A DNA stretch of 5,340 nucleotides from Zygophlyctis sp. KS116 (lineage: Eukaryota > Fungi > Chytridiomycota). Where the stretch lies: positions 1 to 5,340 of the forward strand of contig BAAFSQ010000482.1 in assembly GCA_054661495.1 (NCBI GenBank), given 5' to 3'. Each line of letters opens with the position of its first letter. Position 1 is the stretch's first letter. This document shows, in pieces, positions 27 to 5,258 of this stretch. The position numbers and the translations under genes were made by a program. The notes beneath the pieces were generated by a model that did not search any database, had not been told where the DNA came from, and saw only the letters and a list, made by a program, of their open reading frames with translations.

Positions 27-3000
27 ATGGCTAAATTAGTATCACGTATTTCTTTCTGGTTCTTAAACAATATTACAAATGCTAACAAAATGTTAAACAA
101 ATCGACATCAATAAACATGCACACCTATGAGATCACATTTGATCTCCTTGACCATGAGCTCTCATCTGATCTCACTCGAAATAAAAAGGCTTATAATGAC
201 CTTAATCGCTTTTATAGGATCAGACATGATCGTATCGCATTTTTGAAGATCCAAGATGATCTTGATACTACTACGAACGTTTATAATAACGTTATTCGAC
301 ATTTAGATATCTTTAAAGATATATTGTTTAAAGAAATCTTTCGAGATTTAGAGACTAAAAAGAGGGCACCTAGTGGCCTGATATATATTACACATAGAAG
401 GGTGATCACCTTCGTAATATGTAGAAAAAACAATAATCTGAATTATGCGAAACATAATTTATCTTATAGAAAAATATATTTAGAAAATCGTTTAGACAAT
501 CATATACACGGCAGTCCACTACAACTTACAGAACCATATTCCAATCATATTATTCATTATAAATTAAAGATAGAAATAATAGACACAAATATAAGGATCC
601 ATTACGTCACAGAAATGATCATAACTCGTCATCAGAATGTGGCTACGCGTCAAAAATTTACTTCTGAAATGGCACAAGGAAAAGAGAATTTCCCTGAGTT
701 CACTGAGGAAGAGTTAAAGGAATTCGGAGCTTTAACAGATATAAACGAGGCTACTTCCTTCCCACCAGAAATAGTAAAGAAAATTTGTCAAACTGTCAAT
801 GTTGCTGTTAGTATAAAACGCAAGCGCAAAGACGAGGATAGTGAAACAGAGCACAAGAAAATGAATCTTAATCAAGAACACTCAAACAAGCAGTTAAATC
901 ATGTTCCTCGAAAGACAATCAACGTCAACAGATTATACCTGGCCTCAATTGATCCTAAATTTGAAGACAAAGTTAGCGACAAAATTCAGGAGAATTTTAA
1001 AAATCAAATTCGAAGTAATTCTTTTTACCATTCCATCGCATGTATCGAGAGAGCAATTTATGATGATGAGAATACCAAATACACTCACCTTGAAACAGTA
1101 TCTGTAATCAGTTGGAAACAGTTTAATGATGCAAAAAAAATAATCACTATTAATGTTGATTCAGTAAAATTTAATCATCAACCTATCAAGGATAATACTT
1201 TAAAAGAATATATTGGCCAAATAATAATTCCTTTGCGCAATATAGATACAAATGATATAAAAACGATCCTAGAAAATGATAAATTAATGAATCAAACGAT
1301 AGAAAAATGGTACCAAACAAAATTCTACAAATATCTTCAATACGCAATATTAGAAAATGAAGATTCAAAAGTTTTATATATTACTTTTCACTACACGTTC
1401 CAGCAATGGTCGAAGATTTTTGATAAAGACAAATGGGTTAAAACAAAGAATATACTTAGAATCACGCCAAAAATACACTTCTCTGGTATTATCATCAGAG
1501 GTTATATCGAAAATACTCATATCGAAGCTATTTCAACTGGCGGATATGATATTAGAAAATCGTTTGAACAATATAAAAAACCACTGACGGTATATATAAT
1601 AGATCCTAACCATATCAGGATAAACCAGTATCTAAAAGTTCAGAAGAAAACGATCAAATCATGGAAACTGAAAAATAATAATAAAATGTATCTGAGCTTT
1701 TTACTCGGTAACCATGGAGCACATATGTTAAATGGAAACACAGACAACATGCAAATTGATACTCCACTTACCACACAAGAATCCTTTAAAATACATTACT
1801 TAAATATAAGAGGAATGAATATAAATAAACTTGAAATAATCAATAAATACATGGACAATAATCCAAAAACCATCCTTTGCGTAGCTGAGACATGGTTCAT
1901 CAAACATGAAGAAGTTCAAAAAAACAAATATTTTTTCAGCAGTAGCTTAAAACCAATATTAAAAGAAAAAGGGAGAAGACATGGTGGAGGATTATCAATC
2001 TTTGTTAGTAAAGATTTAAAAAACCACATTAAAATATCAAATCAACAACCAAATTATATAGAAACAAGTATATTAGGATCCAAACTCATCTTTGTCTATT
2101 TCAAGCCCAGTATGGGATCAGTAGAAATTAAATCTGAACTAGATAGAATTCATTACAAGAAACCTGATCTTCTTATCGGTGACTTCAATATAAACTTTAA
2201 ATTATTAAATAGCAATATACACAAACAAAATGCAGTATTGGATTATTGCAATCCAAGACAACTAAACTTGTGTGAATACAATTCAAATGATAATAACAAG
2301 TGGGACTTCTGCTTCACTACAAATAACATTAAATATCAATCAATCACATACACACGAAAAAGTAATTTTGTCAAAACCATTAAAAAGAATACAACTGAAA
2401 CAGAAATCGATCAAATAGAAATCAATGAGGAATACACGAATACAAATGATAAAGCTATCAAAACCGATCACGGGATCATAACTCTCAAGAATGTAAGATT
2501 TAAAACAACAACAGACAAAGAAGAACTCAATGACACAACCTATGAATCATACAATATTTGGAAATTACAGAATCCCACAATACGTATAAAGTTTATTAAA
2601 GAATATGAAAAAAACACAGATAATATACAAGGAATAAAAAATAGACTAGAAAATGCACAAACACCCTCTACACGACAGCAAATAATTGATGAATTCAACA
2701 ACTTTATAAATAATGCAATCCATCGTACATGCTACAATATTTTAGGAAAATCAAGATACAGAAACAAAAAAAACCCAAAAAGAAATCTACTTAAAAGACT
2801 TCAAAATTCTAATTCTGTCAGTAACACCAATCATATAATAAAATTATGGAAAAATGATAGAAATCCTATCGAACTTAAAGGAACAATTGACGAGGCAAAA
2901 AGCTATTACCAAAACTTATACAAGATAAACCAAGATAATGACATCATGGATATAGATGAAAAAGAAATTAACAATAAACGAGATCCTGAAACTAACATAC

Positions 3001-5258
3001 ATACTAATAATATTATTACTTCTCAACCAACAGCCTATAAAATATATAGTTTAATTAAAAAATACGACAGTTCAAAAGCGGCAGGACCAGAGAAAATCCC
3101 AGTTATCATTCTTAATAGACTTAAAGAATCAAAAACATTCTTAATTCATCTATCAGACTTATTTTACTATTGTTTAAAATACGAAATGAGCCCATTACAA
3201 TGGAATGAATCATTAATCTCAATTATCCCAAAAAATAATAAAAATGACTTTACAATTAATAACTCTAGAGGAATAGCACTTACCGCTGTTTTTAGACGCA
3301 TTTACGAAAAGATAGTGTTAGAAATAACACAACTAGAATCAATAAAAGATGGTTTTAAATTACATCCAAACCAACAAGGTTTCATCAAAAAAACCGGCAC
3401 AATACCCAATGCAATCATGGTACACGATAGCTTAAAATTCGGACGAAAAATTAAAATCTTCATAGACCTTAAGGCAGCATATGATAGAACAAACATAAAT
3501 CTAATATTAAAATATATGGAACAGAGACAAATACCCACCAAAATCATAAACGTTATCAAAAATCTATTTTCAAATTGTTCAAGTCGAGTATTATTTAATA
3601 ACGAAACCAGTGACACTTTCCAAAGAGAAACAGGCATCTTCCAAGGATCTATCTTAGCACCACTATTATTTAATATTTTTATAGACTCACTAGCAACCGA
3701 TCTACAAAAAGAAAGTGATTTCATACATCAAGACAATAAACAAATCCTACAAGAACAATCCGAACATAATCCCAGTAACGAAATTAGAAACAAAGTCAAA
3801 AACAGAGAATATGAAAAATGCATTAATGCAGACTGTACACATACGCTAAAACACCATGCAAATCTTCCAAATGATCATTTCATGTGCCCGATTCCACATT
3901 GCCATTACGTAGCAAGAATAAAAGGTTGTATTACAGCCCATATTAAAAAAAATCATAATAGTAATCAAGTAAATAAAGAATATTACAAACTAATGCCACA
4001 TTTCCTTTTCTTCGCAGACGATATTATTATCAACAGCACAAACGAAAACGAAGCACAAAGACTATTAAATATTATAGGAAACTGGTGTCAAGCAAACGGC
4101 ATGTCCCCAGGCTTCAACAAATGTAATTATATTAGCGATGAAGACCATGAACTAAAATTATTAAACGAAAACTTGGCACGCACAGAAACATACAAATATT
4201 TAGGTCTACCAATTAAACATGAAGGAATAGACTTCCGTACATATCTCCAAAATAAACATACGAAAACAAGAATCGAATTTGAAAAAATTAAAGTCAGTGG
4301 AAACTACCATAAGTCATATCAGCACAAAATCACTGTATTAAAATCACATGTACTATCACATCTAGAATACGCAATGGCAGTTATAGGACTGCTCACAGAA
4401 AAAGAAAGGAAAGAATTAACAAATGAAATTAAAAACATAGATATACTCATAAACCAAAGTCGTCGTTGGGCATGTAATATACCACTAAATGTAATACTAA
4501 ACAGTTGGATGACAAACATTTGGTCTTATTCAGACCTCCTCAACTACAGACAAGCCGCACTACAAGAACAAATATCAAATTTACCAGAAACAAACCCAAT
4601 CAGATCCTTAATCGAAAATACAAATATCATACCAGACAACATAAAAAAAGAATTACTATCACTTAGAACTACAAAATCTACAATATATAAGAAATTTATT
4701 GATGAAAGAAATACAAACAACCAAAAGTTAACTTTAGGACGCTACATCAATCACACCAAAAAACAATCGGTATCAATAAAACACACTGTATGCTATACAT
4801 TCCCATCAAAGAAAAATCATAAATCCAATTCTGATATAATTTTCTCATGCAAAGATCCAAAAATTCAAAAGAACGCAATATGCTGGAGACAGAGAATTGT
4901 ATATACACAATCCAAAGCAATTCATGTAGATAAACATCATAAATATAAATGCAAACATTGCGCCAAAGAATTTTCTATTGGACATGTGAAAGAATGCAAA
5001 TTAATCACTGAAGGTAAAAATAAGAACCCGAAATTGTGGCAAGCTTTCGTTAATGAAAGCAACCAATTTGAAAAGGATTATCCAGAAGCTAAAAACTACA
5101 CATTCTTAGACTTCTTGTTAAATAATCGCCATTTCAAATTATTTCAAAAACTCTATCTTATGGTCAATCATAACCTGCTTCAGAAGAGGTATCCTCAACC
5201 TTCAGAAGATAAATCATCTCCCCGGGCAGAGGACTCACAGGAGCTAAGGATGGAATAA
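27..5258 (+). CDS. Non-LTR retrotransposon polyprotein (N-terminal unknown/ORF1-like region, APE endonuclease, reverse transcriptase with inserted C2H2 finger, CCHC knuckle), 1743 aa
   Basis: Uninterrupted 5.2-kb ORF in AT-rich DNA. An in-frame TAA at 15-17 precedes the ATG, which has a strong Kozak context (A at -3, G at +4: ataATGG). Stop is TAA 5256-5258. APE and RT catalytic motifs are intact. Confidence 0.95.
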   Translation: MAKLVSRISFWFLNNITNANKMLNKSTSINMHTYEITFDLLDHELSSDLTRNKKAYNDLNRFYRIRHDRIAFLKIQDDLDTTTNVYNNVIRHLDIFKDILFKEIFRDLETKKRAPSGLIYITHRRVITFVICRKNNNLNYAKHNLSYRKIYLENRLDNHIHGSPLQLTEPYSNHIIHYKLKIEIIDTNIRIHYVTEMIITRHQNVATRQKFTSEMAQGKENFPEFTEEELKEFGALTDINEATSFPPEIVKKICQTVNVAVSIKRKRKDEDSETEHKKMNLNQEHSNKQLNHVPRKTINVNRLYLASIDPKFEDKVSDKIQENFKNQIRSNSFYHSIACIERAIYDDENTKYTHLETVSVISWKQFNDAKKIITINVDSVKFNHQPIKDNTLKEYIGQIIIPLRNIDTNDIKTILENDKLMNQTIEKWYQTKFYKYLQYAILENEDSKVLYITFHYTFQQWSKIFDKDKWVKTKNILRITPKIHFSGIIIRGYIENTHIEAISTGGYDIRKSFEQYKKPLTVYIIDPNHIRINQYLKVQKKTIKSWKLKNNNKMYLSFLLGNHGAHMLNGNTDNMQIDTPLTTQESFKIHYLNIRGMNINKLEIINKYMDNNPKTILCVAETWFIKHEEVQKNKYFFSSSLKPILKEKGRRHGGGLSIFVSKDLKNHIKISNQQPNYIETSILGSKLIFVYFKPSMGSVEIKSELDRIHYKKPDLLIGDFNINFKLLNSNIHKQNAVLDYCNPRQLNLCEYNSNDNNKWDFCFTTNNIKYQSITYTRKSNFVKTIKKNTTETEIDQIEINEEYTNTNDKAIKTDHGIITLKNVRFKTTTDKEELNDTTYESYNIWKLQNPTIRIKFIKEYEKNTDNIQGIKNRLENAQTPSTRQQIIDEFNNFINNAIHRTCYNILGKSRYRNKKNPKRNLLKRLQNSNSVSNTNHIIKLWKNDRNPIELKGTIDEAKSYYQNLYKINQDNDIMDIDEKEINNKRDPETNIHTNNIITSQPTAYKIYSLIKKYDSSKAAGPEKIPVIILNRLKESKTFLIHLSDLFYYCLKYEMSPLQWNESLISIIPKNNKNDFTINNSRGIALTAVFRRIYEKIVLEITQLESIKDGFKLHPNQQGFIKKTGTIPNAIMVHDSLKFGRKIKIFIDLKAAYDRTNINLILKYMEQRQIPTKIINVIKNLFSNCSSRVLFNNETSDTFQRETGIFQGSILAPLLFNIFIDSLATDLQKESDFIHQDNKQILQEQSEHNPSNEIRNKVKNREYEKCINADCTHTLKHHANLPNDHFMCPIPHCHYVARIKGCITAHIKKNHNSNQVNKEYYKLMPHFLFFADDIIINSTNENEAQRLLNIIGNWCQANGMSPGFNKCNYISDEDHELKLLNENLARTETYKYLGLPIKHEGIDFRTYLQNKHTKTRIEFEKIKVSGNYHKSYQHKITVLKSHVLSHLEYAMAVIGLLTEKERKELTNEIKNIDILINQSRRWACNIPLNVILNSWMTNIWSYSDLLNYRQAALQEQISNLPETNPIRSLIENTNIIPDNIKKELLSLRTTKSTIYKKFIDERNTNNQKLTLGRYINHTKKQSVSIKHTVCYTFPSKKNHKSNSDIIFSCKDPKIQKNAICWRQRIVYTQSKAIHVDKHHKYKCKHCAKEFSIGHVKECKLITEGKNKNPKLWQAFVNESNQFEKDYPEAKNYTFLDFLLNNRHFKLFQKLYLMVNHNLLQKRYPQPSEDKSSPRAEDSQELRME
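816..830 (+). other. Candidate nuclear localisation signal KRKRK (aa 264-268)
   Basis: Basic cluster KRKRK, followed 8 residues later by KK, within a charged, probably disordered stretch. Confidence 0.5.
1710..1739 (+). other. NxxxHxxNGN motif (NHGAHMLNGN, aa 562-571), candidate polyprotein processing site
   Basis: Reads MYLSFLLG-NHGAHMLNGN-TD and ends 16 aa before the first APE strand (KIHYLN). Function is inferred from recalled similarity to a viral motif. Confidence 0.5.
1785..2490 (+). other. APE-like (exonuclease/endonuclease/phosphatase family) endonuclease domain
   Basis: Motifs in the expected order: YLNIRG (1797-1814), CVAETW (E621, 1887), GGGLSIFV (1983), VYFKP (2094), IGDFN (2175-2189), WDFCF (D760, 2304), TDH (2463-2471, equivalent to SDH). 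Confidence 0.92.
3075..4215 (+). other. Non-LTR-type reverse transcriptase domain (motifs 0-7)
   Basis: KAAGPEKIP (motif 0, 3075), W..S.I.IIPK (3201-3233), SRGIAL (equivalent to YRPISL, 3264), QQGF (3372), FIDLKAAYD (3459-3485), GIFQGSILAPLLFNIFID (3633-3686), FADD (4011-4022), GMSPGFNKC (4098-4124), YKYLG (4191-4205). Confidence 0.96.
3879..3956 (+). other. Classical C2H2 zinc finger inserted within the RT domain
   Basis: FMCPIPHCHYVARIKGCITAHIKKNH = F-x-C-x4-C-x12-H-x4-H (C1287, C1292, H1305, H1310), with a hydrophobic Ile three residues before the first His as in the C2H2 consensus. Confidence 0.85.
4950..4997 (+). other. C-terminal CCHC zinc knuckle
   Basis: CKHCAKEFSIGHVKEC = C-x2-C-x7-H-x3-C, in the usual post-RT position for non-LTR ORF2 proteins. 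Confidence 0.8.
5178..5209 (+). repeat. 10-bp direct repeat CTTCAGAAGA x2
   Basis: Exact copies at 5178-5187 and 5200-5209, each preceded by AAC (directly, or with CTG between). Confidence 0.75.

Follow-up and report, generated by a model that had tools for sequence, protein, structure and literature searches.

A predicted C2H2-type zinc finger inserted into the reverse transcriptase palm of an APE-type LINE from the chytrid Zygophlyctis

The stretch of DNA that we analysed (the window, 5,340 nucleotides) is the entire contig BAAFSQ010000482.1 (C482) of the assembly of the chytrid fungus Zygophlyctis sp. KS116 (GCA_054661495.1), which comprises 12.7 Mb in 1175 contigs. It holds a long interspersed nuclear element (LINE) with a single open reading frame (ORF), and the reverse transcriptase (RT) of this element carries, between its motifs 4 (B) and 5 (C), a long insert in which a classical zinc finger is predicted (Table 1). 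The RT domain matches Pfam RVT_1 with E 1e-25, the match being broken into two stretches by the insert, and every near-invariant column of a 148-sequence alignment is present (motif A D..D, QG, ADD, K and YLG). An initial annotation of this DNA had described the RT motifs as intact on both sides of the insert, and these results agree; all seven motifs of a non-LTR RT (LTR, long terminal repeat) are found. Its closest solved relatives by sequence are R2 and L1 ORF2p (E about 1e-15), and the same two are closest by fold (E 1e-17 and 3e-16). Among the matches listed, the only named ones in the databases are vertebrate L1 elements (E 1e-4), and the endonuclease is nearest to that of L1. There are no LTRs, the 3′ end is A-rich and the insertions are dispersed, as in LINEs. 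By its sequence, we classify the element as a non-LTR retrotransposon of the apurinic/apyrimidinic endonuclease (APE) type.

Table 1. Features of the Zygophlyctis LINE, with nucleotide (nt) positions in the window (aa, amino acids; AF2, AlphaFold2; pLDDT, predicted local distance difference test)
Feature	Position (nt)	Strand	Residues, motifs and basis
LINE, single ORF	27..5258	+	1743 aa: N-terminal part without recognised family, APE endonuclease, RT with insert, C-terminal CCHC
APE-like endonuclease	1797..2477	+	catalytic N593, E621, D719/N721, D814-H815
RT fingers and palm through motif B	3075..3686	+	motif A 3459-3485, motif B 3639-3686
Start of insert: predicted acidic continuation of the motif-B helix ("stalk")	3687..3764	+	aa 1221-1246; AF2, alignment
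Polar linker, variable	3765..3875	+	pLDDT about 52-65 (AF2)
Predicted C2H2-type finger	3876..3956	+	ligands C1287, C1292, H1305, H1310; pattern, conservation, AF2, fold matches
Linker returning from the finger to the motif-C strand	3957..4010	+	alignment, AF2
RT motifs C (FADD), D and E, thumb	4011..4646	+	alignment, AF2 model, fold match
CCHC zinc knuckle at the C-terminus, as is usual in LINE ORF2 proteins	4950..4997	+	Cys/His pattern

Motif B of the Zygophlyctis RT (F-Q-G-S...F-N-I-F-I-D) occupies aa 1205-1220 (nt 3639-3686). The insert between D1220, which ends at nt 3686, and F1329 of the FADD motif, which begins at nt 4011, measures 108 aa (nt 3687-4010), close to the approximately 109 aa of the initial annotation. 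Counted from the LF of motif B to the xADD of motif C, the spacer is 113 aa long in the Zygophlyctis element as against 19-31 aa in about 180 of the 198 relatives listed. These relatives were gathered by two database searches, one a profile search run exhaustively over 1.84 billion representatives, which gave 78,000 matches of which the best 150 were used, and the other a word-indexed search. Within the insert the sequence C1287-x4-C1292-x12-H1305-x4-H1310 (nt 3885-3956) is exactly the finger pattern that had been annotated inside the palm, it is in frame, and its ligand spacing is that of the classical C-x2-4-C-x12-H-x3-5-H finger; the relatives have C-x2-C-x12-H-x4-6-H/C. When the whole ORF is shuffled, a CCH[HC] pattern turns up in 0.6% of cases. 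The Cys/His pattern by itself is suggestive and not decisive, and its conservation across relatives is the stronger argument. Among 201 proteins collected, the pattern stands 50-72 residues past motif B in every carrier, and a clear finger with the same pattern outside that site was seen in only one protein, where it is N-terminal. In the linker ahead of the finger there is also a K-C-x4-C followed by a His (nt 3816-3857), with D-H-F directly before the finger, which is found only in the Zygophlyctis element, in a second copy in the same genome (on contig C891) and in the metagenome proteins P0057 and P0072. This extra Cys pair may be a second metal site, in a part of the insert where the confidence of AF2 is low.

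The contig is a collapsed repeat of a short-read assembly, and in principle the insert could be an artefact, whether an unspliced intron, a private insertion in a dead copy or an assembly chimera. The initial annotation would have fallen with an insert missing from sibling copies or with unconserved ligands; the copies and relatives that we found carry the insert and keep its ligands. The C891 copy, which is 58% identical over the region, has an insert with C-x2-C-x12-H-x4-H and one TAA within the finger (the stop codon was read through as X), and a more decayed copy on contig C510 retains the second half of the insert. Contigs from three independent metagenomes (lake, freshwater and estuary) cross the insert; one from run X4 spans 3426-4590 with 13 differences and one from run X5 spans 3663-4243 with 0 differences. 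No joints that skip the insert were found in four metagenome runs. The insert is moreover stop-free and in frame, it occurs in at least ten proteins from other samples, and purifying selection at the codon level (see below) shows its translation. The element's own copies, the database carriers, the independent metagenome contigs and the codon constraint thus exclude an intron, a private insertion and a chimera, and we consider the chance that the insert is an artefact to be negligible. The same genome also contains at least eight LINE families, about 40% identical to the element, that match both flanks of the insert with few residues between them and are therefore insert-less; contigs C590, C454, C385, C380, C471 and C602 carry such families.

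The insert-bearing proteins of the databases (P0001-3, P0056, P0057, P0060, P0062, P0064 and P0072, and also P0199, P0200 and P0201) all derive from metagenome or single-genome data and fall into four subfamilies with 35-60% RT identity. The Zygophlyctis element's own subfamily (P0057, P0072, P0200) ends its finger with H-x4-H, P0056, P0060/P0201, P0062 and P0064 with H-x5-6-C, P0001 with H-x5-C-H, and P0002/P0199 and P0003 with H-x4-C. A ten-sequence alignment shows no variation in the two Cys and the first His, and the fourth ligand is in every case either His or Cys. In most pairs the synonymous divergence (dS) is saturated, and the usable measures are the proportions of non-synonymous and synonymous differences (pN against pS) and one close pair. 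In that pair, P0057 and P0200, the insert has a non-synonymous divergence (dN) of 0.005 at a dS of 0.21, and dN/dS goes down to 0.02; in deeper pairs the pN of the insert is 0.30-0.39 against a pS of 0.7-0.87, with a pN of 0.18-0.22 in the RT flanks. A 99%-identical environmental variant differs in the finger only by I1298V and I1302V, the changes listed for it overall being 19 synonymous and 21 non-synonymous. From these codon changes it follows that the insert is translated and that purifying selection acts on it, though more loosely than on the RT core.

A rival explanation is that the finger is a tolerated passenger, a self-folding zinc module in a permissive loop that would be kept since its misfolding would harm the RT and that would add no activity of its own. 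This is consistent with non-synonymous change that is about 1.6-2 times as great in the insert as in the RT flanks, and with an insert length (about 64-103 aa among carriers) and a non-ligand sequence that vary widely. Two further relatives, P0004 and P0059, have an intact-looking ORF with a spacer of 35 aa and no finger, and P0200 (L044), a sibling copy from another metagenome, has a 4-residue in-frame deletion within its finger (C-x2-C-x8-H) in a frame that is otherwise open (1029 aa). However, a functionless insert of 65-100 aa would be expected to be often lost from a compact retroelement, the four ligands, the 12-residue spacing and a K/R-G-x-hydrophobic-T-x-H core have been retained at 35-40% RT identity, and the dN/dS of the insert is well under 1. 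On balance a mere passenger appears unlikely to us, about a one-in-four prospect.

For the phylogeny of the carriers, a maximum-likelihood tree was built from 76 RT cores with the insert columns dropped. Eight carriers together with P0004 and P0059 form one clade in this tree with an SH-aLRT support of 100, and when the eight carriers were constrained to one clade, the resulting tree exceeded that of a quick unconstrained search by 9.5 log-likelihood units (p-value of the approximately unbiased test 0.71). The initial annotation had proposed that other RTs with Cys/His inserts between motifs 4 and 5 be mapped onto an RT phylogeny, and the carriers so placed are compatible with a single clade. 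Because the carriers group together without the insert columns, a single gain of the insert is plausible. All ten members of the clade, including P0004 and P0059, have in common an L-Q-K-E-x-D extension directly past motif B, and the tree would fit either one gain with P0004/P0059 as the sister group or one gain followed by one loss.

The structure of aa 1030-1540 was predicted by AF2 from the 148-sequence alignment, and the model of the RT with its insert has a mean pLDDT of 90.9 and a predicted template modelling score (pTM) of 0.85. In the model the motif-B helix is one helix from aa 1211 to 1246 (model residues 182-217), which runs about 25 residues past its usual length of about 15. The finger has a pLDDT of 77-79 and is folded as beta-beta-alpha, its short strands spanning aa 1285-1286 and 1295-1296 and its helix aa 1299-1310, and the FADD strand past the insert has a pLDDT of 95. 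When the insert was modelled alone, a beta-beta-alpha finger was obtained again. Foldseek matches to this insert-only model are nearly all classical C2H2 fingers (CTCF, ZFAT, ZFY, ZNF692 and TFIIIA), at levels that are non-significant (local root-mean-square deviation 1.2-2.5 Å over about 30 residues, E 0.1-2), and the structural aligner VIA gave the same families, also non-significantly (Z up to 3.0). A feature search of the ESM Atlas with the insert gave weak leads only, some of them in C2H2, zf-met and jaz clusters, with recognition under a useful level. A classical finger has a hydrophobic core made of an aromatic residue ahead of the first Cys, a Phe past the second Cys and a Leu three positions short of the first His. 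For this core, F1285 and I1302 are present, and the central Phe position is Ala with a Val adjacent to it; a Phe at that position is confined to P0002 and P0003. Searching the genome for a host paralogue of the finger gave none, the only matches being copies of transposable elements. From the ligand spacing and the predicted fold together, we conclude that the insert holds a predicted classical finger, of C2H2 type here and C2HC in most relatives.

The motif-B helix of right-hand RTs begins at the nucleotide pocket and heads away beneath the palm sheet, and the strand after it runs back to the catalytic hairpin. Since the insert is placed at the turn beyond this helix, on an extension of about 25 residues, it would come out at the back or edge of the palm, well clear of the catalytic aspartates. 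The finger would thus be a module tethered at that face, probably tens of angstroms from the catalytic site. The initial annotation had put the finger next to the active site, which is true only along the sequence, the chain leaving from the end of the motif-B helix that faces away from the aspartates.

Together these results show an insert that is conserved, with its four ligand positions, in a small clade of freshwater LINEs of chytrid type, and we propose that it represents a lineage-specific domain insertion into the palm of a LINE RT, probably acquired once. In this arrangement the motif-B helix would be lengthened to a short acidic stalk, from which a flexible linker would lead to a single zinc-stabilised beta-beta-alpha finger (C2H2 or C2HC) and the chain would then return to the FADD strand. 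During target-primed reverse transcription (TPRT) the finger may touch nucleic acid largely independently of sequence, this being either the target DNA that wraps the back of the enzyme or the template RNA, and the contact would steady the complex instead of selecting a specific site. We lean tentatively towards the reading that the finger is such an accessory, non-sequence-specific contact stabilising the TPRT complex, and put it at somewhat under an even chance. The stronger proposal, that the finger works as a nucleic-acid clamp built into the RT palm and grips the target DNA or the template during TPRT from a helical stalk on the enzyme's back, is possible but doubtful. A nucleic-acid role is plausible because the RT-internal insertion 6a of R2Bm assists upstream target DNA binding in the initiation complex (PMC10499050), because R2 has its upstream target DNA wrapped round a positively charged back surface, as has likewise been proposed for ORF2p (PMC10830420), and because the C2H2 fingers of L1Tc are a nucleic-acid chaperone (PMC2805920). 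The finger and its return linker are mildly basic, with a charge of +5 in the Zygophlyctis element, +7 in P0056 and +6 in P0060. Classical fingers read bases through helix positions -1, +2, +3 and +6. These are I, G, C and A in the Zygophlyctis finger, and they are variable and mostly Ser, Gly or small in relatives. With small, non-polar and variable residues in the base-reading positions and with insertion flanks that bear no relation to one another, the finger is unlikely to target specific sequences.

Several observations count against the finger being a stabilising contact to nucleic acid. A Pfam scan of the Zygophlyctis insert gave no C2H2 match (only zf_CopZ, E 0.39), and the fingers of relatives match Pfam C2H2 families at E 4e-5 to 1e-3, all under the gathering scores, which means that no Pfam C2H2 profile is matched above threshold. 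Of the domain scan and AlphaFold modelling that had been proposed as checks of the initial annotation, the first therefore did not return a Pfam C2H2 family, while the second gave a confident RT with a beta-beta-alpha finger. The whole insert is near neutral (-2 to +5), and the fingers of P0002 and P0003 are barely basic. The small or non-polar residues at the base-reading positions are equally compatible with no nucleic-acid binding at all. The placing of the finger behind the palm is derived from general RT topology and from the secondary structure of the model, in which the linker has low confidence. In addition, the finger appears to be dispensable, because P0004 and P0059 are without it and P0200 has a deletion in it.

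The finger could instead be a protein-contact module that docks on its own polyprotein (the APE, the N-terminal ORF1-like part or the C-terminal domain), on a second copy or on a host factor. The C2HC variant of the classical finger is known from protein-binding fingers, and the C2H2 finger of EEA1 works likewise. In most of the subfamilies the fourth ligand is a Cys, Gly, small or non-polar residues occupy the base-reading positions, with Thr at +5 and Lys or Asn at +9 conserved, the stalk is acidic, and the EEA1-Rab5 finger (3mjh), a protein-binding C2H2, is among the weak structural matches. On the other hand, no result points to a partner, the N-terminal regions that might serve as one are not conserved between carriers, and the flexible linker and moderate finger confidence of the AF2 model resemble an undocked module. 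We regard a protein-contact function as rather improbable, at about one chance in five, and retain the steadying contact to nucleic acid as our working proposal.

Insertions between the conserved motifs of LINE RTs have been catalogued. For human L1 ORF2p, insertions 0, 2a, 3a and 6a are listed (PMC10830420), and none in this catalogue lies between motifs 4 and 5 or is an autonomous zinc domain. The Zygophlyctis insert is like those of L1 and R2 in being a lineage-specific segment between conserved motifs. It differs from them in position, 6a of R2 being located between motifs 6 and 7, and in nature, the known insertions being loops and helices of the RT fold whereas the Zygophlyctis insert is a predicted metal-binding domain on a stalk. 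The initial annotation knew of no APE element with a finger in the RT core, and our search of the full-text literature likewise found no published finger placed between motifs 4 and 5 of an RT, in a coverage that is incomplete and largely omits subscription papers and Repbase reports. A large functional insertion in the core of an RT is known from the IFD/TRAP of telomerase, which illustrates that the core tolerates and exploits modules; the IFD, however, lies between motifs A and B′, is not a zinc finger and serves roles specific to telomerase.

C2H2 fingers have been described elsewhere in LINEs. The C2-L1Tc region of Trypanosoma cruzi likewise consists of C2H2 fingers of an APE-type LINE, and binding and chaperone activity have been demonstrated for L1Tc (PMC2805920). 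These are two C-terminal fingers outside the RT with basic flanks, for which no sequence relationship to the Zygophlyctis finger is shown, and they correct the statement of the initial annotation that C2H2 fingers of LINEs are normally N-terminal and belong to elements with a restriction-like endonuclease (RLE). The N-terminal C2H2 fingers of R2 and other RLE-type elements are also classical beta-beta-alpha fingers, and that of R2Bm binds target DNA, unusually, via the minor groove (PMC10499050). They differ in that they are N-terminal, RLE-type and associated with sequence-specific targets, whereas the Zygophlyctis element is of APE type with dispersed insertions. The CCHC knuckle of LINE ORF2, which the Zygophlyctis element also possesses, is another zinc module that contacts target DNA; its spacing and fold class are different, it follows the thumb and wrist, and it is ancestral to LINEs rather than specific to a clade. 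What is known, then, is C2H2 fingers at the N-terminus (R2) and the C-terminus (L1Tc) of LINEs, and what appears to be new is a LINE RT with a conserved domain insertion of this kind.

LINE RTs have solved structures and are under engineering for gene insertion. The loop from the motif-B helix to the catalytic hairpin accepts a module of 65-100 aa in elements that are still active, which makes it a naturally validated permissive site, and the related LINE families of this genome that lack the insert provide a built-in control for the contribution of the finger. Should the finger contact nucleic acid, APE-type elements would have a new way to acquire binding functions. If it is in fact a clamp, this would be the first natural LINE RT whose catalytic core has gained an autonomous domain for binding DNA or RNA, and it would offer a natural blueprint for placing programmable binding domains at this loop in gene-writing enzymes derived from retrotransposons.

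Upstream of the RT, the APE region was recognised through its profile, which matches human L1 endonuclease structures over the whole domain (E 3e-10 to 6e-9; 2v0s, 8sp5 and 1vyb at E 3e-10 to 2e-9), and the invariant APE columns of an alignment with relatives coincide with the catalytic residues given in Table 1. The profile was required for this, since a search of the PDB with the APE region of the Zygophlyctis element alone gave nothing. The relative P0201 carries Pfam PF03372, which the Zygophlyctis sequence alone matches only at E 0.07. Between its W-D and D-H motifs the APE has about 30 extra residues (aa 776-805, nt 2352-2441) that are absent from all 11 aligned relatives. The N-terminal part of about 590 aa (27-1796), fused in frame to the APE, has no family match in Pfam. 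P0056 shares with the Zygophlyctis element the layout of a single ORF, but its N-terminus shows no similarity to this part. In the P0199 element (L049) an ORF1 of 485 aa, which overlaps its ORF2 by 17 nt, stands apart, and it too is unrelated in sequence.

The ends of the contig bear on the history of the element. Its final 77 nt are common to two contigs (C60 and C304) that diverge after 7-9 A, its initial 77 nt are common to a third contig, and a third 3′ flank is present as a loose end in metagenome run X3, so that there are at least three different 3′ flanks in total. The contig therefore stands for several collapsed copies of a repeat that is inserted at two or three sites or more, a sign of recent activity of the LINE. 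In run X3 the word depth of the element's unitigs is 1057-1837, with 57 and 77 for two unitigs of diverged copies, which hints at perhaps 15-25 near-identical copies if these two unitigs are single-copy. At one 5′ junction (contig C229, L035, 1-140) the first 61 nt of the element are tandemly doubled after an A run. None of the public RNA runs searched contains the element; the public runs that contain the sequence are all freshwater, lake or estuary metagenomes. A metagenome contig with a sibling element also carries flagellar (DRC10) and nucleoporin genes. Both the habitat of these runs and these neighbouring genes are in keeping with a freshwater chytrid as host. Within the Zygophlyctis assembly, a fragment at C385:5091-6097 is 85% identical to 1941-3018 of the window, on a contig that also bears a LINE of an insert-less family, which suggests nested or clustered LINE insertions.

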